From Octopus bimaculoides (taxonomy: Eukaryota), in the NCBI RefSeq assembly GCF_001194135.2, contig NC_069005.1, positions 1,343,246 through 1,406,588 on the forward strand: a stretch of 63,343 nucleotides of DNA, written 5' to 3'. The notes beneath the pieces were generated by a model. The model had not been told where the DNA came from. It was given only the letters and a program-made list of their open reading frames with translations, and ran no database searches. Position numbers and translations under genes: made by a program. The first letter of the stretch is position 1, and each line of letters begins with the position of its first letter. This document shows positions 25,855-57,551 of the stretch, piece after piece.

Positions 25855-26049
25855 GTGCAGGCATGGCTGTGTGGTAAGGAGCTTACTTCCCAACCACATG
25901 GTTCCAGGTTCAGTCCCACTGCGTGACACCTTGAACAAGCATCTTCTACTATAACCTCAGGCCGACCAAAGCCTTGTGAGTGGATTTGGTAGACAGAAAC
26001 TGAAAGAAACCTGTGATATATATATATATATAAAGATATATCTATTTGG

Positions 26050-35217: not shown

Positions 35218-35635
35218 AACAGCTTCTTGTATGCTTTTGGGAACAGTACCGAAACTGGAGCTCAGTTGATGTATACGAGTTCCAATCATGGACTGCCGGG
35301 GTCTGTTTGTACATCAGAGGCTGGATACATTGTATATACCACTGCGGCGCCAGGGATGGAGTCTGTCACAGACTCCTCTGGATTGCTGCCACAACCTCAC
35401 TTACAGGAAGTAATCACAGAACACCTTGACAATCACTTGGTACATCCAAGGACGACTTTAATAAATGGACGTATGGCTCAAAACGGATTTGATAATCCGA
35501 TGGACTTATCGAATGGTAAAGTAGTTCAAGTTATTGACATGAAAAAAGAGGATTCTCGACAATACGATCACAATCAAGCAGCTACGAATTACCATCACAA
35601 TGGTGTGACGGTTGGCATACCAGAATCTCAACATG
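35218..35635 (+). CDS. Su(H): Su(H)/RBPJ (CSL) N-terminal coding exon A, containing CtBP-type motif PMDLS; first in-frame ATG at 35269
   Basis: Pyrimidine tract + ttcag| acceptor at 35217. 139 open codons (NSFLYAFG...MYTSSNHG...DNPMDLSNGK...GIPESQH). Donor G|gtaag at 35635/35636, phase 1, joins exon B in frame. The gene name rests on recalled motif conservation, not a database search. Confidence 0.85.
35497..35511 (+). other. Encoded CtBP-binding short linear motif PMDLS (PxDLS class)
   Basis: ccg atg gac tta tcg, in frame within exon A. Confidence 0.8.
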
Positions 35636-35773
35636 GTAAGGCAACAAACAATTCCTTTTCCTGATTTTCTCCATCGAAACTTTATCAGGCATTTTCTTTG
35701 TTTTCTAATCATGTTTTTCTTATAAGCATCTACCCTGTTCATATGCTTCAGTTAATCAAAAACTTAGAAATGT

Positions 35774-36110
35774 TTAACCCTTTCCGTATCCTATTTCTCT
35801 TGAAATGCACTTTCTTTTGTTTGTTTCAATTAATTTTGGAAGTAATGAAGAATTAAGTAAAATACATTTGTTATTATTAAGATGTTATTTGGAACATATC
35901 AGTCAACCTGAAATTCTGATGGCATTAATTTAGATCACTTTAACCCTTTTGTTACCATATTTATATTAAATATACTGCCTTTTATTTGTTTCAATTCATT
36001 TTGAAAATAATGAAGAATTAAGTAAAATATCCTTGTTGTTATTTAGCTGGTGTTTAGAATACAAAGACTAGTATGGATTTTTGATGGAAGATTTTCATTT
36101 AGATCATAAA
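35774..36110. mobile_element. Two head-to-tail partial TTAA-MITE family B copies just downstream of exon A
   Basis: ttaacccttt...gtttcaattaattttg(g/a)aa(g/a)taatgaagaattaagtaaaata...tagatca starting at 35774 and 35940. Other copies near 4300(-), 20490, 29550, 31215(-), 42583, 51995(-), 58335(-) and 63087. Confidence 0.65.
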
Positions 36111-37261
36111 GTTGTATTTTTGTTCTAGCCAAATAAACACACACACACTAGATATTTAGTCTTTACTCATTTATTACTGTTCTTATTTTATAACTCATAT
36201 CCATTTATTATTCACTTAAGAATTTGATTAAAATTTTAATCATGGCATAATTACTTTAATATAAGATAAAACTGCTTATAGTTTTGGTCTCTCTGTTTTT
36301 CTTCTTCTTCTTTACACTAAAATGTTTTTCCTTGTTGGTTTATCACATGAATCGGTTAATATTTTCATATTTTCAACACTGATTTTTTAATATGTGACTG
36401 TTATCAGTTTGATAATAGATTTGACATTTGTTTGGCCGAACTCTTAATCTGGTTCCAACCCTCACACTAAACTACCATTAACATGACAGAAATGTCTTTC
36501 AGTGTAGCCTCCAAACCAGGTGTTGGTAACCTGTTTTGAGAAGTGGACCACATGAGATATGACTCCACACAGGGTCAGTTTTCACTTGGTCATTCAGAAA
36601 GTCCTGTTGGCTACAGTTTGCCCATGACTGCTTAAAACTATATGTTTACAATGACCATCTAAATAAGTCATATTTCTATATAAAATGGAATATTGTTTTT
36701 TGAGATACCAAATGAGGAAAATTTGTTTTATTTGTTTCTTACTGAAGAATTTAACACTTTCATTATTAATGTTAGAAATGGAGATATATTTTGTATAAAA
36801 AATGGTGAAACAACAGGATTAAACGAACTGTGACTTCTTGTGTGATTTTGAAGGAGTTTTCTACTCCCAGAACCCCCNNNNNNNNNNNNNNNNNNNNNNN
36901 NNNNNNNNNNNNNNNNNNNNNNNNNNNNNNNNNNNNNNNNNNNNNNNNNNNNNNNNNNNNNNNNNNNNNNNNNNNNNNNNNNNNNNNNNNNNNNNNNNNN
37001 NNNNNNNNNNNNNNNNNNNNNNNNNNNNNNNNNNNNNNNNNNNNNNNNNNNNNNNNNNNNNNNNNNNNNNNNNNNNNNNNNNNNNNNNNNNNNNNNNNNN
37101 NNNNNNNNNNNNNNNNNNNNNNNNNNNNNNNNNNNNNNNNNNNNNNNNNNNNNNNNNNNNNNNNNNNNNNNNNNNNNNNNNNNNNNNNNNNNNNNNNNNN
37201 NNNNNNNNNNNNNNNNNNNNNNNNNNNNNNNNNNNNNNNNNNNNNNNNNNNNNNNNNNNNN

Positions 37262-37315
<54 letters not shown>

Positions 37316-38832
37316 TATATGAGGAATTTCTTTGAGTTTCCATCGACCAAATCATCTCTCAAAGCATTGGTCAGCCCTTTGGATTTATAGTTGAGCTGCT
37401 GGTTTCGAAGTACGTAGTTATTCATAAATATTTTCCTTTCCTTTGAATTTGGAAAAGACATTGACATCTCAGCTGGGTAGCGAAACTCTTTTTAATGTAT
37501 ATTTTGCTTTGGAATTTTTTCCAAGTTTCTTTTCTTTTTTATCCTTTACAGATTTCAAGCTGATCACAAACAAAATATCACAGCTCTTTTGTTTAATCCA
37601 AGACAATTTGTTAGAGTTTGTGGTTATCTAAATTGGTTGATGTGTGGATAAACTTGCTCTTCAGTAGTGGGTGTGCATGTGACTTTAATACTCAAGTCTG
37701 TGTGTGTGTGTGTGTGTGTGTTCTTATGTGTATGTGATTGTCTGCTTGTAGTTCAGCCCAGGAACCTCAAATGGAGAATCCCTGGAATTTTCACAGTATC
37801 ACCATATTTCTAATTGATTGTATCTCGAGAATCTGAGTTAGTCTGATTCTTTTTTTGGGGACAACCCCATCATTTTTTAGGTTTTTATGCAGATTTCGTT
37901 ACATAAACCACTGCACTTTGTGTGTGTGTGGGGGAGGGGGATGGTCAAGGACAATGTAAGACGTCCTGACTTTGAAGCCATTTTGTCATTTTTACCTCTG
38001 TTAATTACCAACAACAAGACTTTAAAAAATAATCGAAAAACAACTTCAAAAATTATTCATACATAACAAACGGTTAAAGTTAAAAAAAAACAACGCATAT
38101 ATTTCGCTAACATTCACTTTATTATTAATAAATTTTCAAAAACGTTTTGTCAAGAAAAAAAAATGCAAATGACTCAAGGGACACAACTCTTGAATTCCTT
38201 TAGGAATTTTTTTTTTATCCTTTCTGTTTTCTGTTTTAGTTAATATGTTTAATTGTATATTTGAATAAACATTGATTAGATTGAGACAGTCATTTAAATA
38301 TGTAGCATGACCTAATTATTTTCATGTGATTTTCACTATTTTTGATTCTAGAATTAAAAAAAAAATGCTTGAGTACCTTAGGAGAAATTTTTTTCTTATT
38401 TCTTTGGCAATATCATTATTGCACCCACCCCATGTTTTTTTTTTGTCATTAATGATTATTCTAAGAATAATTATTCTATGTTTTTTTTTTAATATTTTTA
38501 GTTTGAGAATTGACTATCTCTGACAAAATACCTGGTGGTATTTACTTATGGACATTTGTCTGTATTGAGTTTAAATTCAACTGAGTTGAACTTAGCTTTT
38601 TGTCCTCCTGGGTGGGGCCTTGATTAAATAATGCAGCTGCCAAGTCCTGGATCAGTTTCTATTTCTGTAATGTGTCCTGCATATGGATGAAGTTAAAAGA
38701 GAGGACAGCATAGGATGCTTGGTTTTGCATTTATTTAGTGTATAAAAATTATTCATGTATAATGAGTCCATTTTGGCTGTAAGCAGCAGGAGCACTACAT
38801 AATTAAAGAGTGTTTTGTGTGTGTGTACAAGT

Positions 38833-38867
38833 GCAGGCATGGCTGTGTAGTTAAGTTTGCTTTAGAA

Positions 38868-38920
<53 letters not shown>

Positions 38921-39035
38921 TTTGGTCGGCCCGATGATATAGTAGAAGACAGTTGCCCAAGGTGCCACGCAGTGGGATTGAACCTGGAACCATGTCGTTG
39001 GTAAGCAAGCTTCTGACCACACAGCCACTCCTGTG
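38833..39035. mobile_element. Inverted pair of SINE family 2 heads around a (TA)n array
   Basis: Plus head gcaggcatggctgtgtagttaag at 38833, (TA)n at 38869-38916, minus copy ending aagcaagcttctgaccacacagccactcctgtgcc at about 39035. Confidence 0.65.
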
Positions 39036-40023
39036 CCTATGTTGTTTTGAATTTGAAAGTGATCTGAATGAAATATTTTCATAAATTGAAGTTTCTTGTT
39101 CTTTGAGTTATTAAATTTGAATAAGAAGTGGAATTCCTTTTAAAAATATTCAAACTCGGGTTTTGAAAATCTCTTTATAAACCAGATTATTTGATGTCCT
39201 GGATAATTGTGGGTCACAATGTGTGTTTGTTCTTCCCTTGGTTGTGCTTGTCTCTTCCACTGGGGCCTAAATTTTTTGACAATGTTATCATCCTGTCACC
39301 TTGGAGATCTTTTGATTAGCGCCTTCCAATCTCTTGGATGCAAGTTGATATCTTCATGGGTCCACCTATTGTCTGTGAGCCTTGTGACATGTGCAGTCCA
39401 GTATTTCTTCTGGTCTTCTTTGTTGTGAGTTCAAATCTCATCAAAATCCAATTTTGCCTTCCATCCATTCAAGGTTGATAAAATAAAGTACCAGTCTAAG
39501 AACTGGGACTGATGGCCATCTTCCTAAATTATAAACCATTATTAAAGATATTTATAAACAGCAATTATTTTTCATTGTTTTTTGTTTCTCTCTCTTTCTC
39601 TGTCTCTCTTTGTCTCTACCTGTCTGTCTTTCTCCCACAAACAATTTATTAAATACCTTTTCATTTCTGTGATTTTGGGAGTCTTTTGTGTTTTTCTTCA
39701 TGTTTTTTTTTTTACCATCTCATTATATATCTGGCGGGATATTGGCAGCTCTTCTTGGCAATAAGTGAAAACTCTAACACCAATCATTGTATTTGAAAAG
39801 TCTTTCAAAAGAAAGGAAGATTTTGTTTGCGTACTTTTATTGAAGCCCATTTGGTTATTAATTGTTTTTTTACTCTTTATGAAACAGGGGGGAAAACGAA
39901 AATGTTGCCAAGCTTTATGTCTTTGGTTCCTGCTGCTGTAGCGAGTGGGGGGTACTGGGTGTGTCTGGCTCCTGTTTGTGGTGGGAGTGAGCTTGTGTCT
40001 TGAGTCTTTACCAGTGTTAGTAT

Positions 40024-40640
40024 TTAACCCTTTAACTATGAAATCATATTCCATGGTTATTCCACTAACGATGTTAAATATCTACCAAGAAACAAAACAA
40101 AAGGTATTTTCTGCAAGTCACACTGCCTCAATAAACTCGACATATCTCAATGAATAATAGTTTCAAACATAACCATTCCTTAACAAAAGATAGAATGGGA
40201 TATAAAACTGCTTTCCGTAGCTAAGAATTATTAAATTTTGAATAGATATATATCTGATTTCAGCAGTAAAGGGGTTAAGCAATGATAGCAACAATTATGA
40301 GAATAATTACACTAATGACATTCCTTATTCTCTCATCATCATCATTAAGCATCTGTTTTCCTTGTTGGCATGTATTATAATTAACTAATTTTAACCCTTT
40401 AACTGTGAAATTAAATTTCATGGTTATTCCAGTAAATGATGTTAAACGTCTGCCAAAAATAGAATTGGTATTTTCTGCAAGTCCACATTGCATCAATAAA
40501 ATTGACATATCTCAATGAAAAATGGTTTCAAACATGACATTCCTCAACAAAAGATAGAATGGTGTATAAGACTGCTTTCTGCAGTTAAGGGTAAGGAAAT
40601 TTTGAGAGAATATGTCTGATTTTGAAAGTAAAAAGAGTCA
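40024..40640. mobile_element. Two tandem copies of TTAA-MITE family C (40024-40278 and 40391-about 40640)
   Basis: TTAA-CCCTTTAACT...CAGTAAAGGGG-TTAA. The second copy aligns along its length (ggtattttctgcaagtc, gacatatctcaatgaa, aacaaaagatagaatgg). Confidence 0.65.
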
Positions 40641-41112
40641 CTTCATTTTCTGGTCAAAATCCTTCTTCTTTGCCATTCTTCCATGGGTTTCTCTGATGGT
40701 CTTGAAACCATGGCAACTTGAACCACTTAAGTTACATCACTCCTCCTCCTCCTTCTCCTCATCATCATCATGAGTGTTTTAACATCCACTTTTCCATGCT
40801 TGATGGAGTTAGTGAGGCAGATATTAGTTGAACGCTCAGGAAAAATGGAAAAGTCTTTTACATTTCTAGCCTATGCTCTTAAACAGAAAGGATTAAATGA
40901 GGGAAAAATGGAGAAAGAATGAAAAAAAAACAGAGAGAGAAAAAAATGTGCAGAGTTCAACAGTCCAACATGGCAAGACGACTGGAAAAAAAAAAAGAGG
41001 CTGAATGAAAGAGAGATAATAATAATAATAACAGTAAAAGTGACCCCAATGAACTAAGCATATATATATATATATATATATACATATATCTTATACACAT
41101 ATACATGCATGG

Positions 41113-41143
<31 letters not shown>

Positions 41144-43480
41144 TGCACATATATGATCATAAAATTAGATGCTGGCTCATCAACTGCCAGTTTTCTGCCC
41201 CTAGTGTTGTTAGAATGTATCTTCTTCAAGCTCCTCATTTCTTCACTATTATTTCTAATCGTTCAACAGACGTGTTTGTATGATCTATTTTAATCGCAAC
41301 TCCTCTCAACCACCACACATCATCCATAGATTTCTGAGATCTTAAACAATAGCACATTTATAGAAACTTAATAGAAACAGTCGCTTATCGCTTATTCACA
41401 AACTTATCTCTCTTTGTCTACCTGCTACTCACCTAAGCTAACGACATGGACACAGCACTGTTTTCTAATCTTTTCTCCCTGTCTTTGTGTTTATCATTTC
41501 TTTTTGTGATAGTGCCAATTAGATAACCGAGGCAGGTGAAGCTTAGGAAACTATCTGTCTACAAAGAAATAGGACTTTTATTTAAATAAAAATGAGTTAT
41601 TTGAAATTTATTCAAATATCGAAATAGTTCCATCCATTATTGAGTCATTACTTGTTTAATGTTTGTTTTTTTCCTTTAGAAACACATCCCAGAAAGAGTT
41701 TCTTGTGTGCTGTTCTTGCAAAGACTTTTCCTTTTAATCGTTTGGCATTCAGATTCCTCTGTCAAATGTGATGCTTATTGATTCAAAAGATATTTTGAAT
41801 CAATCATGTGTTATCTTATAACTTCAAGATTCTAATGATGTGAGTGTTTATTTGTAGAATGGCATTGCAGGGTATGCATGAGTGGTTGGATCTGGTCAGT
41901 CTCAACATAAAACAAGTAGAATTTTGGGGCTGGATTTGACTGGATTTAATGCTTGACTGATTGTGACTCAGTTCTCCTTTCATTTGTTTTTTCTGAAAAT
42001 GCAGCACAGATTCTACAGTAAATGATGCATCTTCAATTTTTTTGCTTTTAAAATTTTGTGGCATTGAATTTCACAGATGCCTACTTCTTTGGAAACTTCT
42101 TAGACACAGTCAGGTAACAATTTTCACAGATCACACCATGGACATTCACAATGTAACTGTCGTCTGTTGTTGTGGCGGCTCATCCGTCTGATATATGGCG
42201 TAAAAATAAAACAAATTTTTCTCAAAATGAAGGCGAATTTCATGAAAGCCTGGTTGTGTGGTTAAGAAGTTCACTTCACAACCACATGGTTTCAGGTTCA
42301 GTCCCAATGAGTGGCACCTCGGGCAAGTGTTTTCTACTATAGTCCCAGGCTGATCAATGCCTTGTGAGTGAACTTGGTAGATGGAAACTGTGTGGAAGCC
42401 CAGTGTGTGTGTGTATATATGAGTATGTGTGTTTTTGCTTATGTATGTACCCACCCACTACTTGACAATTGATGCTGGTTTGTTTATGTCCCTGTAACTT
42501 GGCAGTTCAGCAAAAGAGACTGATATAATAAGTACTAGACTTTAAAAAAAAGTACCGAGCTCAATATGGTCAACAAAACTATTTAACCCTTTTTTTTTTA
42601 CACCAAATTCCTGTAGAAATACCATTGTTTCAATTGATTTTCAAAATAATGAAGAATTTGATAAAATAATTTTGTCAGTATTAAACTGGTGTTTGGAATG
42701 TAAATAAACAATGGATTTTAATGAAGCATTTTAATTTAGACCCCTTCTAATCAGGAAGTTTTTGTCATAGAACCAAGGACAATTTCAGGCAGGTTGGTAT
42801 TGGAAATGTCAAGGTGGTGCTCCAGTATGGCCACAGTCCAATGACTGAAACAAGTTGAGGATAAACACTTGGTTCTTGCAAATCCATTCCTGTGTCCAAT
42901 TCACAATAAATGGCCAGACATATAAAACAGACATTCACACTAACTTGTCTTGATGGACGACTTACTGATGTTGTTTGTTTTTTTTTCCTTCTTTCTACAA
43001 CCCCTTTTGATCGAATCTCTACCCCTCCCCCCTTTTTTCTCTTCCCCAAAAAGAAAAGCTCTTCTTTGTATTTTGTCCCCTCTGTGTTCAGCCCTGTGTG
43101 GCCAATAAAGAAACATATTAGAACCAAGATTCAAAGTCACTTGCACACAAACCTGAAATTACAAGCTCACTGGTGCCACATGGTGGTTTCGCCGTTTTTT
43201 AAAAATCCCGTTTGAATATTTCCTGCGATGCTTCGCATTTTCTCTTTCTCTTCTCTTCCTTGTTCTGAGTTCAAACACTGTGCACGATTGATTTTTACTT
43301 TTGCATTCTTCTGGGGCTGTCATGAACTAAACAGCAGTCAATACAACCAGTGTTGCTTCATTACTGGCCTTTAAACAATTAATTTTGTGCCTCATCAAAG
43401 CAAATCAATATATGGGATGATCAGTTCGCTTTTACTCTCTATTTCAGTTAAGTTACAATTCTTATTGTAACGTATATACA

Positions 43481-43590
43481 TCACACACACACACACACAC
43501 GTGCATGAATGCTTGTGTGCATGTACTTGCTTTCATGCTCCACTTTGATTTTCACTATATATATTTTATGTATATGTATGTGTGTGTGTG

Positions 43591-43654
<64 letters not shown>

Positions 43655-43690
43655 CACACACACGCACACACACACACACACACACACACG
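43481..43690. repeat. (CA)n/(TG)n compound microsatellite, representative of dozens of (TA)n, (CA)n, (AG)n, (TAA)n and (CAT)n arrays in the window
   Basis: Direct reading. Confidence 0.95.
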
Positions 43691-45365
43691 GTGGCTGTGT
43701 GACATCGTCATCTTTTAACTGGTGTGGGTTGGATGGTTTGACAGGGTCTGGTGAGCCACANNNNNNNNNNNNNNNNNNNNNNNNNNNNNNNNNNNNNNNN
43801 NNNNNNNNNNNNNNNNNNNNNNNNNNNNNNNNNNNNNNNNNNNNNNNNNNNNNNNNNNNNNNNNNNNNNNNNNNNNNNNNNNNNNNNNNNNNNNNNNNNN
43901 NNNNNNNNNNNNNNNNNNNNNNNNNNNNNNNNNNNNNNNNNNNNNNNNNNNNNNNNNNNNNNNNNNNNNNNNNNNNNNNNNNNNNNNNNNNNNNNNNNNN
44001 NNNNNNNNNNNNNNNNNNNNNNNNNNNNNNNNNNNNNNNNNNNNNNNNNNNNNNNNNNNNNNNNNNNNNNNNNNNNNNNNNNNNNNNNNNNNNNNNNNNN
44101 NNNNNNNNNNNNNNNNNNNNNNNNNNNNNNNNNNNNNNNNNNNNNNNNNNNNNNNNNNNNNNNNNNNNNNNNNNNNNNNNNNNNNNNNNNNNNNNNNNNN
44201 NNNNNNNNNNNNNNNNNNNNNNNNNNNNNNNNNNNNNNNNNNNNNNNNNNNNNNNNNNNNNNNNNNNNNNNNNNNNNNNNNNNNNNNNNNNNNNNNNNNN
44301 NNNNNNNNNNNNNNNNNNNNNNNNNNNNNNNNNNNNNNNNNNNNNNNNNNNNNNNNNNNNNNNNNNNNNNNNNNNNNNNNNNNNNNNNNNTTATGGAAAA
44401 ACTAAGCACCTATCATAATTCTGCTCTCGTTATCACACCACGCATTATGTTTCATATTTAGGAATCAATAACCAAACTGTTTAGAATTGGTTGCAGTTTT
44501 CATTTATTATTAGTATTAATATCATTATCATCATTATCATTATTATTGTTACGGCTTGTAAAGTAAAGTTTGGAAGCAATCCTTCCCTCTATGTTGGATT
44601 TCAATTAGAAATATATATATAGAAATGTGTATATATATAGATAGATATGTATATATAGATAGATATGTATATATAGATATATATATATATATATAGAGAG
44701 AGAGATAAGAAAGAAATATTGAAGAGGAAAAAGTAGTGAAATTGCTAAAAGCTAGTGTTTGGGGTCGTTAATGATTCGATGTTGTTTTGCAATGGCTGCA
44801 GGGCTAGATGTGTTTTGTGGGTTATCAGTCCCAGCACTCTCTCTGTGTGCATTATCTTTGTCTGGTCTTATCAGCTGTGGGAAAATGCTGGAGTTGTCCA
44901 GATGTGTAGAACTCACGTATTGACAGCTAGTAAATCGAGCCTGCCTGTATGCCTTTTTCTCATAGAGAAGACAGAAAAATCAAAATCTTTAGGAAAATCT
45001 TTAGAGAAAGGTTGGTGGGGAAAGAGCAGCAGCAGCAGTAGTAGTAGCAGTGTGTATATTAACATTAACTAAGACTGCTAAAGAAAGACAAACAAAAAAA
45101 AAAAAAATTAGAGAGCAAAAAAAAAAAAAAAAAAANNNNNNNNNNAAAAAAGGTAAAAATGATGATGGAACCAGCTTCAGATTGTGTATTTGAAGAGTTT
45201 TCACAGTATATGATTGAAGGTAAATAATGTTCTTTGCATGGCAGTTCTCTACTCTCTCTACTTCTCTTCTCCTCTGAGCTTGATTTATTTGTCTGTTAGT
45301 AACCAGTTGCAATTTATAAACAAAACTCATATAAAACTTATGTATTTCATTCTCTTTCATATGTT

Positions 45366-45398
<33 letters not shown>

Positions 45399-48300
45399 CT
45401 TCCTTCCCTCTGTACATCTGTGTGCGAGTTTGTGTTTCACAGTGCACCGAATTATTGCGCATACTATTTACACATACACACATATGTATATCGACATACA
45501 CACACACATTTGGTGCATGCGCACACTCATTGATCGACGTAAAACATTTAACACTCACCACAAACAACAACAAAAATATCGAAAATAAAATAAAATAATT
45601 CAAAGTTGCTTTCTGTGGACATGCTTTTGCTAATGATAATATCTGTAAGTTATCAATATTAACCCTGATGTTGTGATTCCATTGAGTCGAATTTGATGTG
45701 AAAAACCAGGCACTTCTAAAGAACTTCGAGTGAGATGACTGCACTTGCTGCAATAGTGGACATCTGGCTGGGGTTCCCGAGAGAACATTTCCCACTGTGA
45801 CATTGTCGTGCTCACATCTATCTTGTATGTTTTCATCTATAAATTGATCTCCAGTGTCACCTTCCTCAGCTGCAAAATTTCTCAGTTTAACCAGTCGAAT
45901 AACGTGTAAATGCTATAATCGACCCGAGATGTAATATAAGGAGAAAGTGCTTATGGCCAGCTTGAAACAGGTTCACCACATTTCAATTTTTCCATGATCT
46001 CTTTCTGCTCTCTCTAACCTTTCTCGGTTTCCACAGCCATGTTGAATTTCTAGCATTAGAAGATATATTTATCTTTCACCATTACATATTGACTAGATCT
46101 TGTGTTTTTCTTTAATTTATTCCTTTCAGATCACTTCTAATCAATCATAATAATTATTTTGTTTTTAATTAGCTCTTATCATTTAATGATTTTATACAAA
46201 AAAAATAACAAAACTTTTTATTCACATCCTCCTCCTTCATATGCTAACCATTATAGGAACCATAGAAGAACTGTTGTGCATGATTTACTGAGTATCAAAT
46301 GTCATGTTTGTTATTCTTATATATATACCTGTATATACACTCTTTGTTTCCATGAATTTATCAATACTTGTACACCTTATTACTCATCTATTATTCACAT
46401 AGTGTGTGTGTATATGTATGCGTATATGTGTGTGTATATGAATATATATATATATGTGTGTTTATACACACACTCACAATATTTGTATGTATGTATATGT
46501 TTATAGCAACCTTATATTTGTGTAAAGCTCTTATATAACACTTCTATCACATTAAACATTTTTCTTAGGTTAGTTTCTTATTGAAAGGCAAACACTTTCT
46601 TATATTACAAATCTTGTAATATATTCCTGATGTAGATTCAGTCAAAGACAACCTTATTGTTTTGTTCCATTCCTTGATAAATTATAGTTCTGTGCAGAAA
46701 TTCAGGCAAATTTTAGTTTTTATTCTTTGTATAAATTTCCAATTAAAAAAAAAAAAATTACATTCATAACATAATCTTAATGATAACAGCACTGCCCCAG
46801 CATGGTCTCAGCCAACAGACTTAAACAAGTTAAAACAGTAAACAGTGCAATGTTGTTGGAAAGACAATGTGCGTGTATATATATATACATATATATATTT
46901 ATAAAAGGCGTAACACCCATGTTCTTTGTTATTATTTTGAAAATTCGTTAGTTTTGTTCCTCGTGTGATCAAAGACAGATGAGTATGTGTAGAATAATAC
47001 AAGAGAAAACGTCGATGTATTACTGGTTAGATGACCACATGCTATATATATACCCAGGTTTTCGCCACTCACTCACCCCCCCCCCTCTCTGCACTCTTTA
47101 ATCACACTTCCTTCGCAATATCCTGCTACTTATATTGGCGTTCAAACCTCAAGGGTATACCCTGGCACTTACCACCATCGATATCTCTCTCTTCCTTTAC
47201 TCAACCATCCCATTTATATTCTCATCCCCATCCCTTGTGAGTATGCCCAGCATCTCTATCCTGATGTCTCCTGTTCTCTCTCTTCTTCTCCTGCACTTCC
47301 CTCTGGTTGGGTAACCATGTATTTCCTTTGCGGTAGCACACCTGTTTGTTTTCATTCCTGATCTCTCTCTCTCTCTCTCTCTGGCTGGGTCACCTTGTAC
47401 TTCCTCTACAACAAGACACCTGTTTCTGTCTCACTGTAACCTTTCATCCGACACAAGATCACCTCCTCCAATGTCCCCTCCCCTCTTGGAAAGTTTTTTC
47501 GTCTTGCAAGTACTCGGTGACCTTGTCATTGCAGGTGCCATGCAAAAAGCATTCCAGTCCACTCTGTAAAATGGTTGGTGTTAGGAATGGCATCCAGCTG
47601 TAAAAACCTTGCCAAAACTGACCTCACCTGTGTTTGTGCCATGTAAAAAACACTAAGTCCACTCTGCTGATTGGTTGGTGTTAAGAAGGGCATCCAACTG
47701 TAAAAATCCTGCCAAAACAGTCACAGAAGTCTGGTGCAGGCTTCTGCCTGGCCGGCTCTTGTGAAATTGTCCCACCCATGCTAGCATGGAAGGCCGATGT
47801 TAAACGATGATGATGATGATAATGTTTATATTTAGAATAATACTTTTTAATAATAATAACTGCCATAGTCTATGTTTCATTTTTGTGATCTCTTTTTTTC
47901 AGGGGAAAGGGCATGATTTCTATGGTTGGACACCCTTCCTGTCATCAACCACTTTATAGTATAGATTTGGGATATTTTATCAAGTCAATGCTTCTAGAAA
48001 GATTTCCTACAGTTGGTCTGAAGAACCTCCTACTTCAGTTTTTACCCAGATTTATAGCCTTTCCCAGACAATCTGTAATGTAGCTTGCATACTCCTCACA
48101 TCTCATTCATACATTTCATAAAGTTACATTTTCTAATATGTAATATCATCATCCAGTAATGTTCTCAGCAGTGTCTGTTTTTCCATACTGGTCTGTTTTT
48201 CCTCCTGACATGGACATCTTCTTTGGGTACCATTACTCCTCTCCTTAGATAATTAAAGTCATTTTTGTTTCAGCGTAACAAGCATTAATTTTTTCCTGTT

Positions 48301-50397
48301 TACCATAATTGTCAGACTAATGCTGATGTGACTACTATCACAGTCATCATCCTCTACCTCATCCTCATCATCATCTTCCTCATCCTTATCATCATCTCAT
48401 CACCATCACTGTTATTATACAACTTTAATTGGAAAATTTTACAAATGAATCTACTCATCATGGTTTTGATTCTTGCTGTTTTACATGCTCATGATAATTT
48501 ATCATCGACTTGGCAGACATCAGCAAATGATTTGTTCACTGAATTCTATAAACAAGAAGGGTCAGTCTTGTTTAGATTCAGTGATTTGGGAGTAGCTTTC
48601 ACTAAAGAGACATTATCAGCTTGAATCAGCCCTCCATCACTGAATCGAGTGTATTGTCAACATTGTCTGAAGTGAGATGTTCTCCAAAGGTAAAGCACAA
48701 CATACTCTCTTGCAATCTAGATCCATCCCCACCCCTGTTCTGTCTGTCTGTCCCATTCATTTCTACCCACCTTCTATACAATGAGGGTTTACCCTGACAT
48801 CTCATCATTGTTATTTTTATCACTTTCCAGCTCCACCTGATTACTCTTACCTTTTCTTCTAAAAAGTGTGCATGGAGCCATGTAACCCCTCTCCAGCAAT
48901 AAACCTGTTCTGCTCTGCCGCCGTCTCAGACTTTAACCTCTCATCTCCTAGTGTAAAGCTGTCCCCTTGGAGTTCATAGTCTTGCTAACTCCATAGTGCC
49001 CTCATTAGTGCTAGTGTCACTGTAAAGTGATTGGATTTGGGAAGGACATTCGGCCATAGAAATTGGATTTGAGAAGGAAATTCAGCCAAGGCAGATATTG
49101 GAGCCCATAACGTCCTGTCAAACTGTCCAACCCATTCCAGCATGGAACATGAACTTTGACTGATGACAATGAGGATCACTGATGTTTAGGGTCCCACAGT
49201 TCTGTGTCACTGGCCAGGAAGGGTGTTTAGCTGTAATCTGTTAATATCTACTGAAGCAAGGGTTTCATAACGATCTGTACACATCCTCTCATACGGAAAT
49301 GGTTTAGGACACACTAATGTATTTCAATATTTCAATAATTTAACTTACCCAAGTATTTTTGAGCAAAATTAAGTGTTTAACCACAGAAGGCTCATTAATC
49401 TTGTTGTGCTCAGTTCAAACTCTCTCAAATGTAACACAACCTTTTATTTTATCATCAAATCCAATGAGCTTGTATCTCGTAGTCTTCCCCTCTCTCTCTC
49501 TCTCTCTCTCTCTCCAGTCTTATTGTAAAGTTAAATTGTTACCCTTTTGTTATCAATTATATTGCTTGAATTTTCTTTAGTAAATATATCCATTGGTAGC
49601 TAATTAACTTGAATGAGTTCAAATTTTACTGTTTCTTTGTAAGATCTGAGCTCATCGTAAGATGTCGGTCACTAACACTATACAATGGACAAGGTGTACC
49701 TCCTCATGGTACCTATCTACAATGATATGGATTTTACCCACCAATAATTAAGTCCTCTTGCAGTGCTGGTGCCAGGATATGAAACTATGACACTTTAGCT
49801 TGTTTGTTTGGTCTTTTATCTGGTTCCATATTTTTATACTAAAAGAAACTTTGGAGGAATGATGCATTGGTTTAAAACCCATCTTTTAAGACTGAGGGAC
49901 ATTTTGCTTTTAAAAATGGGAATTATTCTTCCAAAGGTAATTCACTGTTTGATATCTTTTACTTGATTGTGTTCTTATAAGTCGACCGATACAGGTGTAA
50001 CTGTTTAAAGTAACTGAAGTGGAACTAATTTTATGATAACTATAACAACTATGTAACTATAGCAACCATGTTACTATGGTACCCAACTTACTAAATGTAG
50101 TCCTGTAATTGGGTCCACTCAGTTATGCTCCTCTACAAATATATAGTTGTTCTTTGTTAATGTAAAAAACAAAACAAAACAAAACATTATTATTATTATT
50201 ATTATTATTTTACTTCTCGGAGTCCTCAGTTTTATTTGCTCTGGTTGATTCTGTGAGAGCGGACAGCAACCTGTTGTCAGAGGTCTCCTAGGATCGCTTT
50301 CTGCAAACTATAAGTTTTGGTACTTGGATGTTAACTCATCGTGGAAGATACTGAACTCCCAAGCACCAACCTCAAAATCCTAGCTGCCCCCAACAGA

Positions 50398-50497
50398 GAA
50401 ATCCCAATAATTGTAGGGGCACTTGGAGTACTAACAACCAAGTTCGAGAGATATGTCAGAGAAATTGGAATTGACATGAGGGCAGAGCAGGCCCCCA
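50398..50497 (+). mobile_element. Short R4/Dong-type LINE fragment
   Basis: IPIIVGALGVLTTKFERYVREIGIDMRAEQ is homologous to PIIVGTLGTVSKNLEKYMEQTGAAIRVEH in the 56.6-kb copy. Confidence 0.6.
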
Positions 50498-50503
50498 AAA
50501 TTA

Positions 50504-50539
<36 letters not shown>

Positions 50540-50540
<1 letters not shown>

Positions 50541-50760
50541 GGTGGTGAGCTGGGAGAATCGTTAGCACACCAGGTAAAATGCTTAATGGTATTTCATCTG
50601 CCACTACATTCTGAGTTCAAATTCTGCTGAGGTCAACTTTGCCTTTCATCCTTTTGGGGCCGATGAATTAAGTACCAGTTAAACACTGGGGTTGATGTAA
50701 TTGACTCATCCCCTCTCCCAAAATGGCTGCTCTTGTGGCAAAAATTTGAAGCCATTATTA
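50540..50760 (+). mobile_element. SINE family 1 inside an (ATT)n array
   Basis: (ATT)n-aaggtggtgagctgggagaatcgttagc...aaatttgaagcc-(ATT)n. Confidence 0.72.
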
Positions 50761-50769
50761 TTATTATTA

Positions 50770-51250
50770 TTATTATTGAGTGAGAGGGCAACACACATTA
50801 TGAGAGTGATGCTGAGGTGCAAATACGTGAAGCCCAATATACTCATCACACCCACCCATCTGATAAGGGTGCACTAGGCAGATGGGGCTCAGTTAGAATT
50901 TTCTTCAGGTTGAGTAGCCCATTCTGCTCAAAAGGTCCCTTAATAAGCTTTGTTTGAGGATGATAAATAAAACATGTTTCCAGAGATGAATTATTGAAAC
51001 CCCAAAGAATTCCTCTCAACACATGGCTATGCTGCTCTCCCACTAGTTCTGCTCATGATCAGAGATGCACATATCATCAGCCATTAAGGGACATGCTCAA
51101 CTGGTTAAGGTCAATCAAGTGACAAGCAGATCTGTGGTATTGAGCAGAATATTTGGTGTAACACATCTCTTATACCAAGACAAAACATGTACATGATAAC
51201 ACTTCCAATCAGTTAAGATCAGAAGCCATGAGAAGCCATTGTCTAATACT
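50770..51250. repeat. Probable interspersed repeat, unclassified
   Basis: GC-richer non-coding block next to an (ATT)n array. It resembles an abundant octopus repeat from memory only; no second copy in the window. Confidence 0.3.
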
Positions 51251-51264
51251 TCATCCACTGCCTG

Positions 51265-51565
51265 GTGTTGCATCTCAGCTTTATTTTAGTGAGTATGCTG
51301 GAAAGTGCCAGCAGACTAAGGTGGCATTTGTTTACTGATCATGCCTCAAGGACCCTGTGGAGAACTCTTGCAGTTCCAAGCAATGATGACTTTCAGAGCC
51401 ATGTTGACGCATTCATTCCAATCTTTTCAAGCCACGTTGTTAGATGAGTGCTGGTTCTTCCAAATGTACCAATCACTGTTGGTGCATTTGTCTACTCCCT
51501 TCATTGGCCAAAACTGGTGCATTTCCCACTTCAATTCTTCTTCCTCTTCAATCCTTTTCTCACCA
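51265..51565 (-). mobile_element. Degraded R4/Dong-type LINE 3' fragment
   Basis: Minus-strand pieces LKWEMHQFWPMKGV / VIGTFG / WLEKIGM / LLGTARVLHRVLEA* parallel the C-terminus of the 56504-57137 copy. Confidence 0.65.
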
Positions 51566-52288
51566 GGACATGCTATGTTGATTACCGTGCATGGCCCAGT
51601 GTAGTACTCATGGTCACTGGATTGTGGGTTCAATTCCCTGACTGGGTGCATGTGTGTTCTTGAGCAAAACACTTCATTTCACATTGCTCCTGTTCCCCTT
51701 CGATCGGAGAGGATCGCTGACCTACTAGCCTAGCCAGCAGGGTGGCATCATTTGAAGGCAAAAACGGTGCAAAAGTGCATTGTGACCAGCGATGTGTAAC
51801 AGTATCTGATAGCCTGGTCAGTCACATGATGTACACACACACACACACACACACATACACACACACACACACACTCACAGAGTGAAGGTGGGCAGTATGG
51901 CCATGGAGGAATTCCTTAGATGATCATCATAGGTCAGCTCAATCAACACTAACCCAGTGTTAAACACCTCTAACACTGACAACTCCATGTGTTAACCCTA
52001 TTCACCCATTTGTTAACCCACCTGCGATTACCCCCCTGGTTCCATGATGCAAACTTTATACTTAAAGTGATTTAAATTTAAACCATCCAACAAAATTCTG
52101 TATAATTTTATGTCCTGAACATCATCTTGATAAAGTTATTTTTATTAAATTCTTTGTTGTTTCCAAAATTAATTGCAACAAAATCAGATTCTTTCAACAG
52201 AAATCTGCAAACAAAAGGGTCAAAAGTTTGTTATTCAAGGGGTTGCTTTTATATCTTTATCACATTAAGACTAAGTAAACTCATCGTA

Positions 52289-52331
<43 letters not shown>

Positions 52332-52381
52332 CTATCTGTACACACACACACATACAATAATATATATATACACACACACAC

Positions 52382-52422
<41 letters not shown>

Positions 52423-52929
52423 NNNNNNNNNNNNNNNNNNNNNNNNNNNNNNNNNNNNNNNNNNNNNNNNNNNNNNNNNNNNNNNNNNNNNNNNNNNNNN
52501 NNNNNNNNNNNNNNNNNNNNNNNNNNNNNNNNNNNNNNNNNNNNNNNNNNNNNNNNNNNNNNNNNNNNNNNNNNNNNNNNNNNNNNNNNNNNNNNNNNNN
52601 NNNNNNNNNNNNNNNNNNNNNNNNNNNNNNNNNNNNNNNNNNNNNNNNNNNNNNNNNNNNNNNNNNNNNNNNNNNNNNNNNNNNNNNNNNNNNNNNNNNN
52701 NNNNNNNNNNNNNNNNNNNNNNNNNNNNNNNNNNNNNNNNNNNNNNNNNNNNNNNNNNNNNNNNNNNNNNNNNNCACTAGATCAACGCTTGTGTATGCGT
52801 GTGTGTGTGTGTGTGTGTGTGCGTGTGCGTGCGTGTGTTTGCTTGCTATACTCACAGCCACTCACTCCCTCTTTTACTTCATAAACCAGGCTCTCTCTCA
52901 ATCAATATAATTGCTGCACCATCCCTCAT

Positions 52930-52979
<50 letters not shown>

Positions 52980-53237
52980 GCACATGCATGTGCACACATA
53001 TATATTGTTGATATACCTTGAAGTATCTGCTTTATATGATTCTCTTTCCCTCTCCTCTCTCCTCACCCCACACTCTATCTCTTTATATATCTAATTCATT
53101 GTCTCTTCCCCCCTCCGTCTGTTTGCCTGTCTGTCTATCTATCCATTTATCAGACCTTCCCCCCCCTCGCCCCACGACACTCACTCTCTCCCAGTCATTC
53201 ATAGAGAAGCAGCATTTTTTTTTTTGTTTTTACTCAG

Positions 53238-53310
53238 AGGGAACATTATTTGTTTTCACAAACAATAATCTAGTTTCATCTACTTCCTCCTCAATTACCC
53301 GGATTTACAG
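53238..53310 (+). other. Candidate 73-nt alternative exon (unverified)
   Basis: Poly-T tract + actcag| acceptor and CAG|gtaatc donor. Open in the phase-1-in / phase-2-out frame (EGTLFVFTNNNLVSSTSSSITRIY). Confidence 0.3.
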
Positions 53311-53382
53311 GTAATCAGATGTTCTGTTTATCTTTTATTGCACTTCTCGTCTTGGCTGTTTTACTTTCATTTCTCGCATAAA

Positions 53383-53384
<2 letters not shown>

Positions 53385-53421
<37 letters not shown>

Positions 53422-53504
53422 ACGTGTGTTTTAGTTATTGTTGTTCAGTTAGTTATTTGTATCCTTGTATAATATTCCCCCTATCTTCCTATCAATCTAG
53501 CTCT

Positions 53505-53542
<38 letters not shown>

Positions 53543-53840
53543 ATGTATATATGTATGTATGTATATATGCATGCATGTATGTATGTATCTATCTCTCTCT
53601 CTATGTATGTACATATCTATCTCTCTCTCTCTCTATGTATGTATATATGTATGTATGCATGTATGTGTATGTATGTATGTATATATCTATCTATCCATCC
53701 ATCCATTCATCCCATCCGTCCGTCCATCCATCCATCCATCTATCTATCTGTCTATCTATGTATCCATCTATCTGTCTACCTGTCTTATTCTATCTATCTA
53801 TCCTATCTCTCTGTCTATCTAATCTATTCTATCTACCTAA
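53385..53840. repeat. Compound (TG)n/(CT)n/(TATG)n/(CCAT)n/(CTAT)n tract
   Basis: Direct reading. Confidence 0.9.
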
Positions 53841-54469
53841 TCTCTCTGTTCACATGGATTAACTGTTAGTACCTTTAAAAAAATAAACATATCCACTAAT
53901 TTTTGTAACACCAATAGATAAACATTAACTTTAGCATCATAACATATCTGGTCCTTAATTCTAACACATCCTTCAGTATCACATGGAAAACCCTTATCAT
54001 CTCCACAATTCACCCACAATTAAAAAACAAAAAAAAAAAATCCACACTTTGCACTTTTGAATCTTATGAAATCTGTCACTCCCAAACTAAAATTACATAA
54101 CAGAATCTCTGAACCCATCTCTTTTTGTAGATATAGGACTTTTAGAACTTTAAAATATTCTAAACCTATTGTGTTCTCAAATAAACAAGCTCTTCTTCCC
54201 CCAGTACTGATATATATTTCCCATACCCTGCCAGTGAAAATCCTCATGCTGTAAATTTTGCATTGGTTCACCCTTTATCCTTGTTCTATTTAGGATATTA
54301 AGGTTGGGAAGTTTTGCTTCCCAACCATGTGATCTAAGGTTCAGTTTCATTGTGTGGCACCTTGGGCTGGTGACTTCTATGATGGACCTGGGCCAACCAA
54401 CACCTTGAGAATGGATTTGGTGGATGGAAACTGAAAGAAGCCCATCTTGTGTATGTATGTATGTATGTA

Positions 54470-55380
54470 CATCATCATCATTATCATCATTTAACATCTG
54501 TTTTCCATGCTGGTATGGGTTGGACAGCTTGGTAGGAACTGGCAAAGCTGGCAGCCACACCAGCTTCCATTGTCTGTTTCCGCTTGGTTTCTACAGCTGG
54601 ATGCTCTTCCTGATACCAACCATTCTATAGAGTTCAATTTTCATATGGCACCAGCAATCAATGCTTTTCACATGGTGCCAGCACCAACATCAAATCTTTT
54701 CATGTCATGCCTCAGTTTTAGGATATCAATTCTGTTGTGGTGGGCAGGTCTTTTTGAGTACAGAAATGCCCCACACATCTGGGTTCTCTATCATCTCTTT
54801 CGTAAGGCTCAGCATCTTGAGATCAGCCTCCATGACTTTATCCCATGTCTTCCTGGGTATCCCTCTTTCCCTCCACTTTCAGTGATCGGCACTTGTTTAT
54901 GCAACTGTCCTCATCAATTCTGTATCATGTGACCAGACCAGTGCAGTCTCCTCTCTTGCACACTGCACGTAATTCCTCTTATGCCTAACTTTTCTCTCAA
55001 TGTACCAGTGCTCTATCACTCATGCACACTGACATTGCACATCTAGTAGAGCATACCAGCTTCATTCCTCTCTAGTCTTTGTATATCTTCTGCATCCAGG
55101 GCCCATTTCTCACTACCATGTAGCATTGTAGTTTGTACACATGTATCATACAATCTTCCTTTTACTCAGAGAGAGAGAGACCTTTGGTTGCCAACAGAGG
55201 TCAAAGCTGTCTGAACTTTCTCCATCCTGTTCTTATTCTAGCAATTACATTTTCTGTACAACCTCCTCCACTGCTAATTAGGTCACCTAGGTAGCAAAAA
55301 TTATCTACAACTTCTAGAGAGCCTCCAGGACATTTGAAGAAATCAGTTCTCCATGTATCTGTGGTCTTTATGGCTCCTGT
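54470..55380 (-). mobile_element. RTE-clade LINE 3' fragment (RT C-terminal region + 3'UTR)
   Basis: Minus-strand LEVVDNFCYLGDLISSGGGC...IARIRTGWRKFRQL...KGRLYDTCV...MLHGSEKWA...LREKLGIRG...RRLHWSGH...GIPRKTWDKV, with stops and frameshifts. Same 3'UTR and (GAT)n tail family as 15290-15875. Confidence 0.8.
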
Positions 55381-55392
55381 ACATCTTCCACA

Positions 55393-55770
55393 TCATCATC
55401 ATCATCATCATTTAACGTCCGCTTTCCATGCTAGCATGGGTTGGACGATTTGACTGAGGACTGGTGAAACTAGATGGCTACACCAGGCTCCAATCTGATC
55501 TGGCAGAGTTTCTACAGCTGGATGCCCTTCCTAACACCAACCACTCCGAGAGTGTAGTGGGTGCTTTTACGTGCCACCGGCACAAAGGCCAGTCAGGTGG
55601 TACTGGCAACGACCACGCTCAAAATGGTCTCACTTGGTTTGACAGGTCTACACAAGCACAGTATATCACCAAAAGTCTTGGTCACCCATCACTGCCTCCA
55701 TGAGGCCCAACACTTGAATGGTGCTTTTTACTTGCCACTGGCACAGGTGCCAGTCAGATGGCACTGACGA
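55393..55770 (-). mobile_element. Young RTE 3'-end repeat
   Basis: Same sequence as 33421-33660. The ORF track gives near-identical spurious peptides at 33499 and 55464. Confidence 0.75.
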
Positions 55771-55854
55771 TGATGATAACGGTGATGACTGAAGGTTAAG
55801 CAATTGAGTATTGATTAGACTAGTATTTTGGAATAGACATTTATTAACGACCAC

Positions 55855-55945
55855 AACCAGCAGCAGCAGCAGTAGTAGTAGTAGTGGTAGTAGTGGTAGT
55901 GGTAGTAGTGGTAGTGGTAGTAGTAGTAGTGGTAGTAGTGGCAGT
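55855..55945. repeat. (CAG)n/(TAG/TGG)n trinucleotide tract
   Basis: Direct reading. A similar (CCA/CTA)n tract lies at 16110-16221. Confidence 0.9.
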
Positions 55946-56354
55946 GACTGTGGTACATAAAGTCTCTTGTTTCTGTAATAACATTTATATCAGCAACTGA
56001 CTTCGTTCGTTTCTGCCCTTCTCCAGGAAACATGAAATGTATCAGTTGCTATGGTTACTGTTAAAACAAACAACAATAAATAAATACATAGAACAACAGA
56101 TTGTTATTGGATTTCTAAAGTCGTTTGCGTTCCTTATCTTTGTTTATGTCCATCTTGTAATTTCTCACATCTTTTCTCCCTGATTGATCATTTCCACAGT
56201 TCAAGCATCAATGCTGGTCGTGACGGCTGCACTCTCTGCTCCAGTTGTTGGTGCAGCAACTCGGTGTTATTATACAGGAGACTAAGTTCCACTCGATTCT
56301 TCCCCGTTCATTAAGTCTTGGGGTCGATTTGTTCAACTAAAACCAACATTTAGC

Positions 56355-56503
56355 TTCAGTCCACCGAGGTTGACTTTGCCTTTCATCCCTTTGGAGTCGA
56401 TTGAATAAGTACCAGTTATGCACTGGGGTCGATATAATTGACTTAATCCCTTCCCCCAAATTTGATGCCTTATGCTTCTAGTAGAAAGAATTATTATTAT
56501 TAT
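56355..56503 (+). mobile_element. SINE family 1 3' half; its (ATT)n tail abuts the Dong-type LINE 3' end
   Basis: gttgactttgcctttcatccc...gtagaaagaattattattattatt. Confidence 0.65.
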
Positions 56504-57137
56504 TTATTGCCTTTGCACAGCTTCTAACGCTGGAGATGTACTACAGTGAACTAAGGTAACGCCCCTTATTTTTCGAGCACCTTCCTGAGTATTTGAGCGG
56601 TTCCAAGCAGTGCTGTTTTCTGCAAGTGCTCCACCCTTATTGCAGCCCCTGTTTGTTCCATGTACTTTTCAAGATTTTTGCTCACTGTTCCCAGGGTTCC
56701 AACAATTATTGGTACTACTACCACCTTTTCTATCGACTCCAACTGCTTAACTCCCCAAGCTAACCTGTCATATCTCTCGACTTTTCTTTCTTCCTTATCG
56801 CATACCTTGTTGTCAGTTGGGCATGTTATATCTATGATCCAGCATAGTTTGTTTTCTTTCTCAATTAAGACTATGTCTAGTTTCCTATTCTCTATCTCAT
56901 GGTCACACTGAATCATAAAATCCCATAGGATCTTTGCATTATCCTTTTCGGTGATGCATCCAGGTTTATGTTTGTACCACTTTTTGCTCTGTCAAGTCCA
57001 TACTTGTTGCAAAGTGTCCAATGGACAATCCTTGCTGTGTTGTCATGACGTCTCTTATATTCTTTCTGGACTAGTGACGTACATTGACTGGTAATATGCC
57101 ATACGTTTTCACCATTTTGTCCACAAATTCTGCATTG
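56504..57137 (-). mobile_element. 5'-truncated R4/Dong-type non-LTR retrotransposon (CCHC knuckle + restriction-like endonuclease)
   Basis: Minus-strand translation CRICGQNGENVWHITSQC (C-x2-C-x8-H-x4-C), then ILWDFMIQCDHEIENRKLDIVLIEKENKLCWIIDITCP...KVERYDRL...PIIVGTLG...LQKTALLGTAQILRKVLEK* (ORF 56566-56916). One frameshift. (TAA)n on both flanks. Confidence 0.85.
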
Positions 57138-57240
57138 TTATTATTATTATTATTATTATACAAGAATCTTGCAAACCAAATACAAAAGTGAAAGATGAAT
57201 TTTATAAATTTCCATTTCTACAATATTTTAATATTTTTTT

Positions 57241-57314
57241 CTTCTTCTTATTGAATCCAATTTCTGATGTTTGTTTTCTTCTTCTTATTGAATCCAATTT
57301 CTGATGTTTATTTT
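57241..57314 (+). repeat. 37-bp tandem duplication (one mismatch) in the 3' splice region of exon B
   Basis: cttcttcttattgaatccaatttctgatgttt(g/a)tttt at 57241-57277 and 57278-57314. Confidence 0.9.
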
Positions 57315-57328
57315 CTTCTTCGTTGCAG

Positions 57329-57551
57329 GGGCTTCAGAGCACTTAATGCCAGCTGGGTCCCTAACACCACCTGACAAAATAAGTGGCGACTCGATTTCTA
57401 TGGCAAACATCCGTCCACTTGGCATCAGTACGCTAACCAATACAATCAAGACCCCACCAAGTCCAATGCCTACTCCATCTCCACCAATCAATAGGATTAC
57501 AGGTGATATTGATCATTCAGACTCAAGGATTACTCACCCGTTTTCTCGCAG
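57329..57551 (+). CDS. Su(H): Su(H)/RBPJ coding exon B, containing Groucho-type motif GSLTPPDKI and a PPSPMPTPSPP tract
   Basis: Acceptor ttcttcttcgttgcag| at 57328. G from exon A plus GG gives Gly in frame: (G)ASEHLMPAGSLTPPDKISGDSISMANIRPLGISTLTNTIKTPPSPMPTPSPPINRITGDIDHSDSRITHPFSR. Donor AG|gtaag at 57551/57552, phase 2. I found no next exon in the window. Confidence 0.88.
57355..57381 (+). other. Encoded Groucho/TLE-binding motif GSLTPPDKI (GSLTPPDKV class of protostome Su(H))
   Basis: ggg tcc cta aca cca cct gac aaa ata, in frame within exon B. Motif class recalled from literature on protostome Su(H). Confidence 0.75.

Follow-up and report, generated by a model that had tools for sequence, protein, structure and literature searches.

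The window analyzed here, a 63,343-nucleotide (nt) stretch of the Octopus bimaculoides genome (assembly GCF_001194135.2, contig NC_069005.1, positions 1,343,246 to 1,406,588 of the forward strand), is the 5' portion of the gene for RBPJ/Su(H), a DNA-binding CSL protein of the Notch pathway. It contains part of intron 1, a coding exon referred to as exon A, a large intron that harbors an alternative first exon, a further coding exon referred to as exon B, and 5.8 kb of the intron that follows; in a newer assembly, the O. bimaculoides RBPJ/Su(H) gene covers ~115 kb and lies on one 35 Mb contig, while the O. vulgaris gene has a range of 207 kb. Coordinates of all features are collected in Table 1. 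Exon A is bounded by an acceptor ending in ccatttcag and a donor starting with gtaagg, and exon B by an acceptor ending in cgttgcag and a donor starting with gtaaga. The junction splits a Gly codon, the first base of which is provided by exon A and the rest by exon B, so that the two exons are joined in frame. The spliced translation reads ...NGFDNPMDLSNGK...GIPESQH/GASEHLMPAGSLTPPDKISGD...TPPSPMPTPSPP...HPFSR, where the slash marks the junction. The in-frame splicing of a PMDLS-bearing exon to a GSLTPPDKI-bearing exon, which the initial annotation had read from the letters, is thus borne out by AG/GT splice sites and by a matching phase 1 on both sides.

Table 1. Features of the window and modelled isoforms of the O. 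bimaculoides RBPJ/Su(H) gene.
Feature	Position in window	Strand	Description
Exon A (Su(H)/RBPJ coding exon 2)	35218-35635	+	418 nt; phase 0 in, phase 1 out
Internal ATG in exon A (MYTSS...)	35269-35271	+	start of NCBI isoform X3 (P0127, MYTSSNHG); both motifs kept
PMDLS, CtBP-recruitment motif	35497-35511	+	P-phi-D-phi-S type; in Table 1 of PMC6777938
A-B intron	35636-57328	+	nominal 21,693 nt
Conserved non-coding block	44844-44927	+	~230 nt upstream of alternative first exon; 82% over 84 nt against Argonauta L009 48200-48282
TGTGGGAA within conserved block	44876-44883
Poly-A run	45081-45151
Alternative first exon, coding part	45159-45219	+	MMMEPASDCVFEEFSQYMIE plus first base of Gly codon; phase-1 GT donor at 45220
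Exon B (Su(H)/RBPJ coding exon 3)	57329-57551	+	223 nt; phase 1 in, phase 2 out
ATG in exon B (MPAGSLTPPDK...)	57346-57348	+	start of isoform X7; Groucho motif only
GSLTPPDKI, Groucho-recruitment motif	57355-57381	+	in Table 1 of PMC6777938
TPPSPMPTPSPP, third exon-B motif	57451-57486	+	nearly invariant in molluscs, annelids, nemerteans, arthropods and velvet worm
Modelled isoforms X1, X2, X3			exon 1 + A + B, or start at exon A ATG; CtBP and Groucho motifs kept
Modelled isoform X6 (564 residues)			MMMEPASDCVFEEFSQYMIE joined in frame to exon B; Groucho motif only
Modelled isoform X7 (538 residues)			starts at Met of HLMPAGSLTPPDK in exon B; Groucho motif only
Modelled isoforms X4, X5			108-residue P/Y-rich N-terminus (MTCTYPADF...PPPSY...CSNFP) joined to exon 4; neither motif
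Program-flagged assembly gaps	36878-37261, 43761-44390, 45136-45145, 52423-52774
Short interspersed repeat	11585-11640, 11929-12025, 18678-18738, 25943-26018, 42315-42388, 54350-54446	both	~50-95 nt
116-codon open reading frame (MIQCDHEIENRKLDIVLIEKENKLCWIIDITCP...)	56566-56916	-	~400 nt upstream of exon B

The assignment of these exons to the N-terminus of Su(H)/CSL, also made in the initial annotation, was confirmed by homology. Over residues 12-224, the O. bimaculoides Su(H) sequence that Miller et al. (2019, eLife 8:e48115, PMC6777938) give in their Supplementary file 3 agrees at every position (100%) with the peptide encoded by exons A and B; exon A (NSFLYAF...GIPESQH) accounts for residues 12-150 and exon B ((G)ASEHLMPAGSLTPPDKI...HPFSR) for residues 151-224. 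When the full published protein was used as the query, a 100% match was obtained with XP_014779917.1, a 694-residue protein annotated as recombining binding protein suppressor of hairless isoform X1 [Octopus bimaculoides], in which exon A likewise encodes residues 12-150 (100%). The annotated protein carries the LAG1-DNAbind, BTD and TIG_SUH domains (PF09271, PF09270 and PF20144) with E values of 1e-33 to 1e-64. These CSL domains are not themselves encoded within the window; their presence in the annotated protein contradicts the idea that the downstream exons might encode a non-CSL protein. Furthermore, the three domains are present in all three classes of isoforms described below, so that the DNA-binding and Notch-binding body is complete in each. 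Note that a homology search with the N-terminus only returned just two short genomic open reading frames (ORFs) and missed the identical full-length protein, which reflects a limit of the word index and not novelty. The gene was known before this analysis, as were its protein sequence and the two motifs; the octopus motifs and the full protein were published by Miller et al. (2019).

Exon A is preceded by another coding exon, and the frame of exon A is open from its acceptor. The annotated protein opens with 11 residues, MNEKDHMNTSQ, which are encoded upstream of exon A and outside the window. Neither this exon 1 nor exon 4 (SHWTTDVLENRHVGQYQDQRLTREAM), the next one after exon B, was found in the window by a degenerate pattern, by six-frame words or by tblastn.

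Each of the two exons carries one co-repressor-recruitment motif. PMDLS sits in the conserved context NGRMAQNGFDNPMDLSNGK, and an alignment of N-termini shows that it is kept as NP[MV]DLS across protostomes, within an NG(H/R)MAQxGxxNP context. GSLTPPDKI lies 57 residues beyond PMDLS and 75 residues ahead of LTREAM, and is embedded in flanks that are conserved across phyla as H-L/M-x-x-GSLTPPDK-V/I-x-G-D/E. That these motifs are not new, as had been stated in the initial annotation, is correct: Table 1 of PMC6777938 gives the strings NGFDNPMDLSNGKVV and HLMPAGSLTPPDKISGDSISMA for O. bimaculoides, taken from scaffold NW_014678436.1. The accompanying statement that mollusc Su(H) binds CtBP and Groucho directly goes too far. 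In PMC6777938, the motifs of Strigamia bound Drosophila CtBP and Groucho in vitro, alanine mutants did not, and the Groucho form assayed was GSLTPPDKV; direct binding was shown only for Strigamia motifs with Drosophila proteins, and not for mollusc proteins. We infer that octopus PMDLS and GSLTPPDKI would bind octopus CtBP and Groucho. Exon B contains a third conserved motif, TPPSPMPTPSPP, which is rich in Ser/Thr-Pro sites, making a role in phosphorylation plausible from its composition. The strings 'PPSP' and 'TPSPP' are absent from the main text of PMC6777938, so this motif is not mentioned there.

The two motif exons are separated by an intron of 21.7 kb, a length that is only an estimate because four assembly gaps lie within it. 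Eleven gaps are present in the window, and the four flagged by the program are all located inside the A-B intron; the exons are uninterrupted, and the reading frame is independent of the gaps. Argonauta hians, whose orthologous locus (L009, 110 kb) contains no N, has an intron of 20,644 nt at the same place. On one strand of this locus, exon 1 (at 10001), exon A (43142-43586), exon B (64231-64453), exon 4 (near 87035) and the body exons (up to 99927) follow in this order, and exons A (445 nt) and B (223 nt) have the same phases as in octopus. The proposed layout of one motif per exon with a large intron between them is thus upheld, with a gap-free intron of 20.6 kb in Argonauta. Exon A has identical boundaries in a genomic contig of the cuttlefish/squid group (L001). 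In three further contigs (L006-L008; runs SRR26493808, SRR26493809 and SRR26493816), the acceptor of exon B falls at the codon position seen in octopus, and the peptide of their exon B homologue closely resembles a protein of the chiton Liolophura sinensis. Because a chiton-like contig shares the position of the exon B acceptor, the intron between the two motifs is old within molluscs. N-termini from molluscs, a nemertean, an annelid, a centipede and a velvet worm align across the junction with nothing missing, reading ...GIPDQSH and D, E or G before it and A..H-L/M-x-x-GSLTPPDK after it.

In most transcripts of the cuttlefish/squid group, a 39-nt cassette encoding 13 residues (VQMLYLGPIKRDH) is inserted between A and B; it is absent in P0146. 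The cassette has two acceptors 5 nt apart (L010 versus L012), and use of the downstream one results in a frameshift and an early stop. Neither the octopus window nor the gap-free intron of Argonauta yielded a convincing match to the cassette, and the same was true, in the window and in Argonauta, of the alternative exon 1 of the cuttlefish group (MEEVFPKRLKLMKVCLE) and that of O. sinensis (MQSNTDLMEESFH).

We examined how the two motifs could be separated from each other at the level of the transcript. Exons A (418 nt) and B (223 nt) are both 1 mod 3 in length, and not the multiple of 3 expected of a cassette exon. Skipping A, B or both shifts the frame in Octopus and Argonauta alike, and because of these phases the motifs cannot be removed as cassettes. 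A CtBP-only protein made by skipping exon B is impossible since the frame breaks, and no CtBP-only form is present in any gene model. The initial annotation had suggested that repressor content is switchable by promoter choice or by splicing; promoter choice fits the public gene models, whereas exon skipping falls with the broken frame. NCBI modelled seven isoforms in O. bimaculoides and eight (X1-X8, the same set) in O. sinensis. As shown in Table 1, the modelled products have both motifs, the Groucho motif only, or neither. The both-motif and Groucho-only classes are also represented by O. vulgaris models of 682, 551 and 525 residues; the pipeline behind these models is independent of NCBI Gnomon, and the alternative forms entered it through PASA updates based on Iso-Seq and RNA-seq alignments. 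Three proteins (P0129, P0126 and P0135) all open with MPAGSLTPPDK. That the alternative isoforms are transcribed is taken here from public annotation. At the start of exon 4, outside the window, the members of the pairs X1/X2 and X4/X5 differ by 13 residues (HWTTDVLENRHVG) located directly before QYQDQRLTREAM; in proteins of Argonauta and the cuttlefish group, the short form is the only one present.

The alternative first exon lies 9.5 kb past exon A and 12.1 kb ahead of exon B, and the phase of its donor matches exon B. It corresponds to the N-terminus of XP_014779924.1 (isoform X6, P0139) with 100% identity; the peptide is identical in O. sinensis X7, and O. vulgaris CAI9741086 departs from it at a single residue. 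Between exons A and B of Argonauta lies a syntenic homologue that encodes MEQGPCFIFQEFSQYVLQ (L009 50557-50611; tblastn E=0.001 with the 110 kb locus as target). Reading in frame from a stop, the ATG of this homologue is the first one encountered, and the phase, a gtaaac donor and an EFSQY core are retained in the midst of an intron that cannot be aligned. Besides exons A and B, the conserved block upstream of the alternative exon is the sole single-copy syntenic blastn block in common with the Argonauta locus (three in total). Within the block, TGTGGGAA fits the CSL-site consensus, and Argonauta retains its GTGGGAA core. The block may be an internal promoter or an autoregulatory element. CSL sites (YGTGRGAA) are not enriched in the whole window (10 observed against 8.5 expected), and the CSL site in the block is only a lead because the window-wide density of such sites is at chance. 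The 10-N gap in this region sits in a long poly-A run (Table 1). A 533-residue protein of the cuttlefish/squid group (P0147, MMLYLGPIKRDH...) was considered as a Groucho-only isoform and rejected as an ORF-calling artefact, as its contig (L010) is an ordinary transcript with an acceptor 5 nt downstream, leading to a frameshift and an early stop.

In the class without motifs, a P/Y-rich exon replaces both motif exons, and its phase-2 donor matches exon 4. This exon is not in the window; in both Argonauta (L009 73135-73557) and cuttlefish (L015 39935-40258), it is located after exon B and before exon 4. Its splicing to exon 4 is seen in a real transcript contig of 2.2 kb from the cuttlefish group (L011, run SRR1386223). 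The encoded peptide follows the pattern MTCT[YF]PADF...MSPPP[SNT]YTTM..YQSYLGDLYCS.DMGYYDPYYPK..CSNFP, which includes a PPxY motif, and the C-terminal half of the exon is nearly identical between octopus and cuttlefish. An exhaustive profile search identified P0155 as a more distant P/Y-rich relative with the same junction, in which ...CSNFP is directly followed by gt.

On balance, we favor as the probable explanation that octopus Su(H) has built-in co-repressor motifs, the content of which is varied only through alternative transcription starts. The canonical transcript runs from a far-upstream exon 1 through A and B to the CSL-body exons, giving a DNA-binding CSL protein with an unstructured N-terminus that bears PMDLS and GSLTPPDKI. 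When activated Notch is absent, CtBP and Groucho would be brought by these motifs straight to Notch targets occupied by Su(H), following the model of Miller et al. (2019) for protostomes lacking Hairless, and the Hairless adaptor would not be required for repression by octopus Su(H). Upstream promoter(s) would give rise to the both-motif protein. On the other hand, an internal start, either at the first exon at 45159-45219 or at the ATG at 57346, would yield a Groucho-only protein, and a first exon downstream of B, spliced to exon 4, would yield the P/Y-rich PPxY N-terminus with neither motif. A transcription start inside the gene would in this manner lower the co-repressor content stepwise, and we infer that the ratio of isoforms tunes repression. 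A more far-reaching version, to which we give distinctly less credence, is that coleoid cephalopods set the number of motifs (two, one or none) on their single CSL protein by at least three promoters, one of which is within the A-B intron, beside the CSL-core block; the isoform ratio, perhaps under feedback from Notch/Su(H) itself, would tune the default repression of Notch targets between tissues, and the no-motif PPxY N-terminus would have a function of its own.

Several other explanations have to be weighed against this one. The motifs could be chance matches in a low-complexity N-terminus, with no recruitment of co-repressors in octopus, given that the P-phi-D-phi-S pattern is short and degenerate and that binding in octopus is predicted only. 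However, GSLTPPDK is exact over 8 residues and its flanks are conserved across phyla, NP[MV]DLS stands in its own conserved context, and the Strigamia versions bind CtBP and Groucho while the alanine mutants fail, so we regard chance matches as highly improbable. Even less credible is that the A-B join is an artefact caused by an exon hidden in a gap or by two genes merged during scaffolding. The four gaps of estimated length between the exons and the additional 13-residue cassette in cuttlefish-group transcripts would be in keeping with such an artefact, but proteins annotated on the later chromosome-scale assembly have the same junction, as do the models of O. sinensis, O. vulgaris and Argonauta; in the gap-free Argonauta locus, 20.6 kb separate the two exons, the order and phases of which are unchanged, with no convincing homologue of the cassette, and orthologues of four phyla are aligned across the junction gaplessly. 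The artefact reading is already contradicted by these observations.

A more serious competitor, although we consider it rather unlikely, is that there is one functional isoform, that an ancient intron happens to split the motifs, and that the short forms are noise, products of non-productive splicing or over-prediction by the gene models. An exon boundary shared with cuttlefish-group, Argonauta and chiton-like sequences is ancient, and the architecture would then need no explanation beyond this; skipping of the exons breaks the frame, and both motifs are present in most non-cephalopod lophotrochozoan models. Several results also weigh against the favored explanation. A search of the 10 kb preceding exon B in cuttlefish did not reveal a homologue of the alternative exon. 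When the Groucho-only proteins were looked up by exact match, no independent transcript contig was recovered, and a homology search with the peptide spanning the junction from the alternative exon to exon B returned only a genomic exon-B ORF; the support for the Groucho-only junction comes from gene models made by Gnomon and PASA. At a distance of 13 nt before the ATG of the alternative exon lies the 10-N gap (45136-45145), which obscures the 5' untranslated region and the transcription start. Short forms may also be spurious because P0147 proved to be an artefact, and the predicted binding of co-repressors in octopus draws on Strigamia motifs that were tested with Drosophila proteins. What speaks against a single functional isoform is that Argonauta keeps the ATG, phase, donor and EFSQY core of the alternative exon amid unalignable intron sequence, that this exon is modelled in three octopus annotations from two independent pipelines, and that the P/Y-rich exon has a near-identical C-terminal half in octopus and cuttlefish, a relative in P0155 and a real transcript.

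The remaining features of the window are outside the coding exons. The short interspersed repeat (Table 1) is also multi-copy in the Argonauta locus, with 80-93% identity, and matches no tRNA or Rfam family; an Rfam scan gave no hits. The minus-strand ORF upstream of exon B looked like a retroelement remnant and has no Pfam match, and a Pfam scan of six intronic ORFs gave no hits. Microsatellites of the (TA)n or (CA)n type flank several of the longer gaps and are probably the cause of the assembly breaks.

The study closest to the present one is that of Miller, Posakony and colleagues 2019 (PMC6777938), which concerns the very same gene and the same motif strings. The GSLTPPDK string was found only in that paper among openly licensed and preprint papers. 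The core finding here therefore repeats a published result. PMC6777938 treats one protein per species, the word 'isoform' is absent from it, and neither the alternative exon 45159-45219 nor the no-motif N-terminus is discussed. The reading of the isoforms as a matter of promoter choice, which draws on public gene models, appears undiscussed in that paper, and the added value of the present analysis is a modest, testable lead on promoter-dependent isoforms. If isoform use differs between tissues, it would be a simple way to grade the default repression of Notch targets without Hairless.

The outcome resembles that of Drosophila Hairless, by which both co-repressors are likewise brought to DNA-bound Su(H) for the default repression of Notch targets. 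However, Hairless is a separate adaptor protein limited to Pancrustacea, whereas the octopus motifs are within Su(H) itself, and the motifs of Hairless are different, namely, a YSIxxLLG-type motif and PLNLS. The Hairless gene, too, has its CtBP motif on a small exon of its own (PMC6777938). In vertebrate RBPJ, alternative first exons likewise give short N-termini ahead of the LTREAM body, such as MDHTEGSPAEE... and MAPVVTGKFGERP... among the matches listed; unlike those of octopus, the vertebrate N-termini have no CtBP or Groucho motif. Vertebrate RBPJ recruits co-repressors through partners such as SHARP/MINT and KyoT2. The logic proposed here is also known from TCF/LEF, where an internal promoter drops the N-terminal cofactor-binding segment of a DNA-binding pathway effector and thereby changes its output. 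TCF/LEF differs in belonging to the Wnt pathway and to another protein family, and the segment lost there binds the activator beta-catenin and not a co-repressor.

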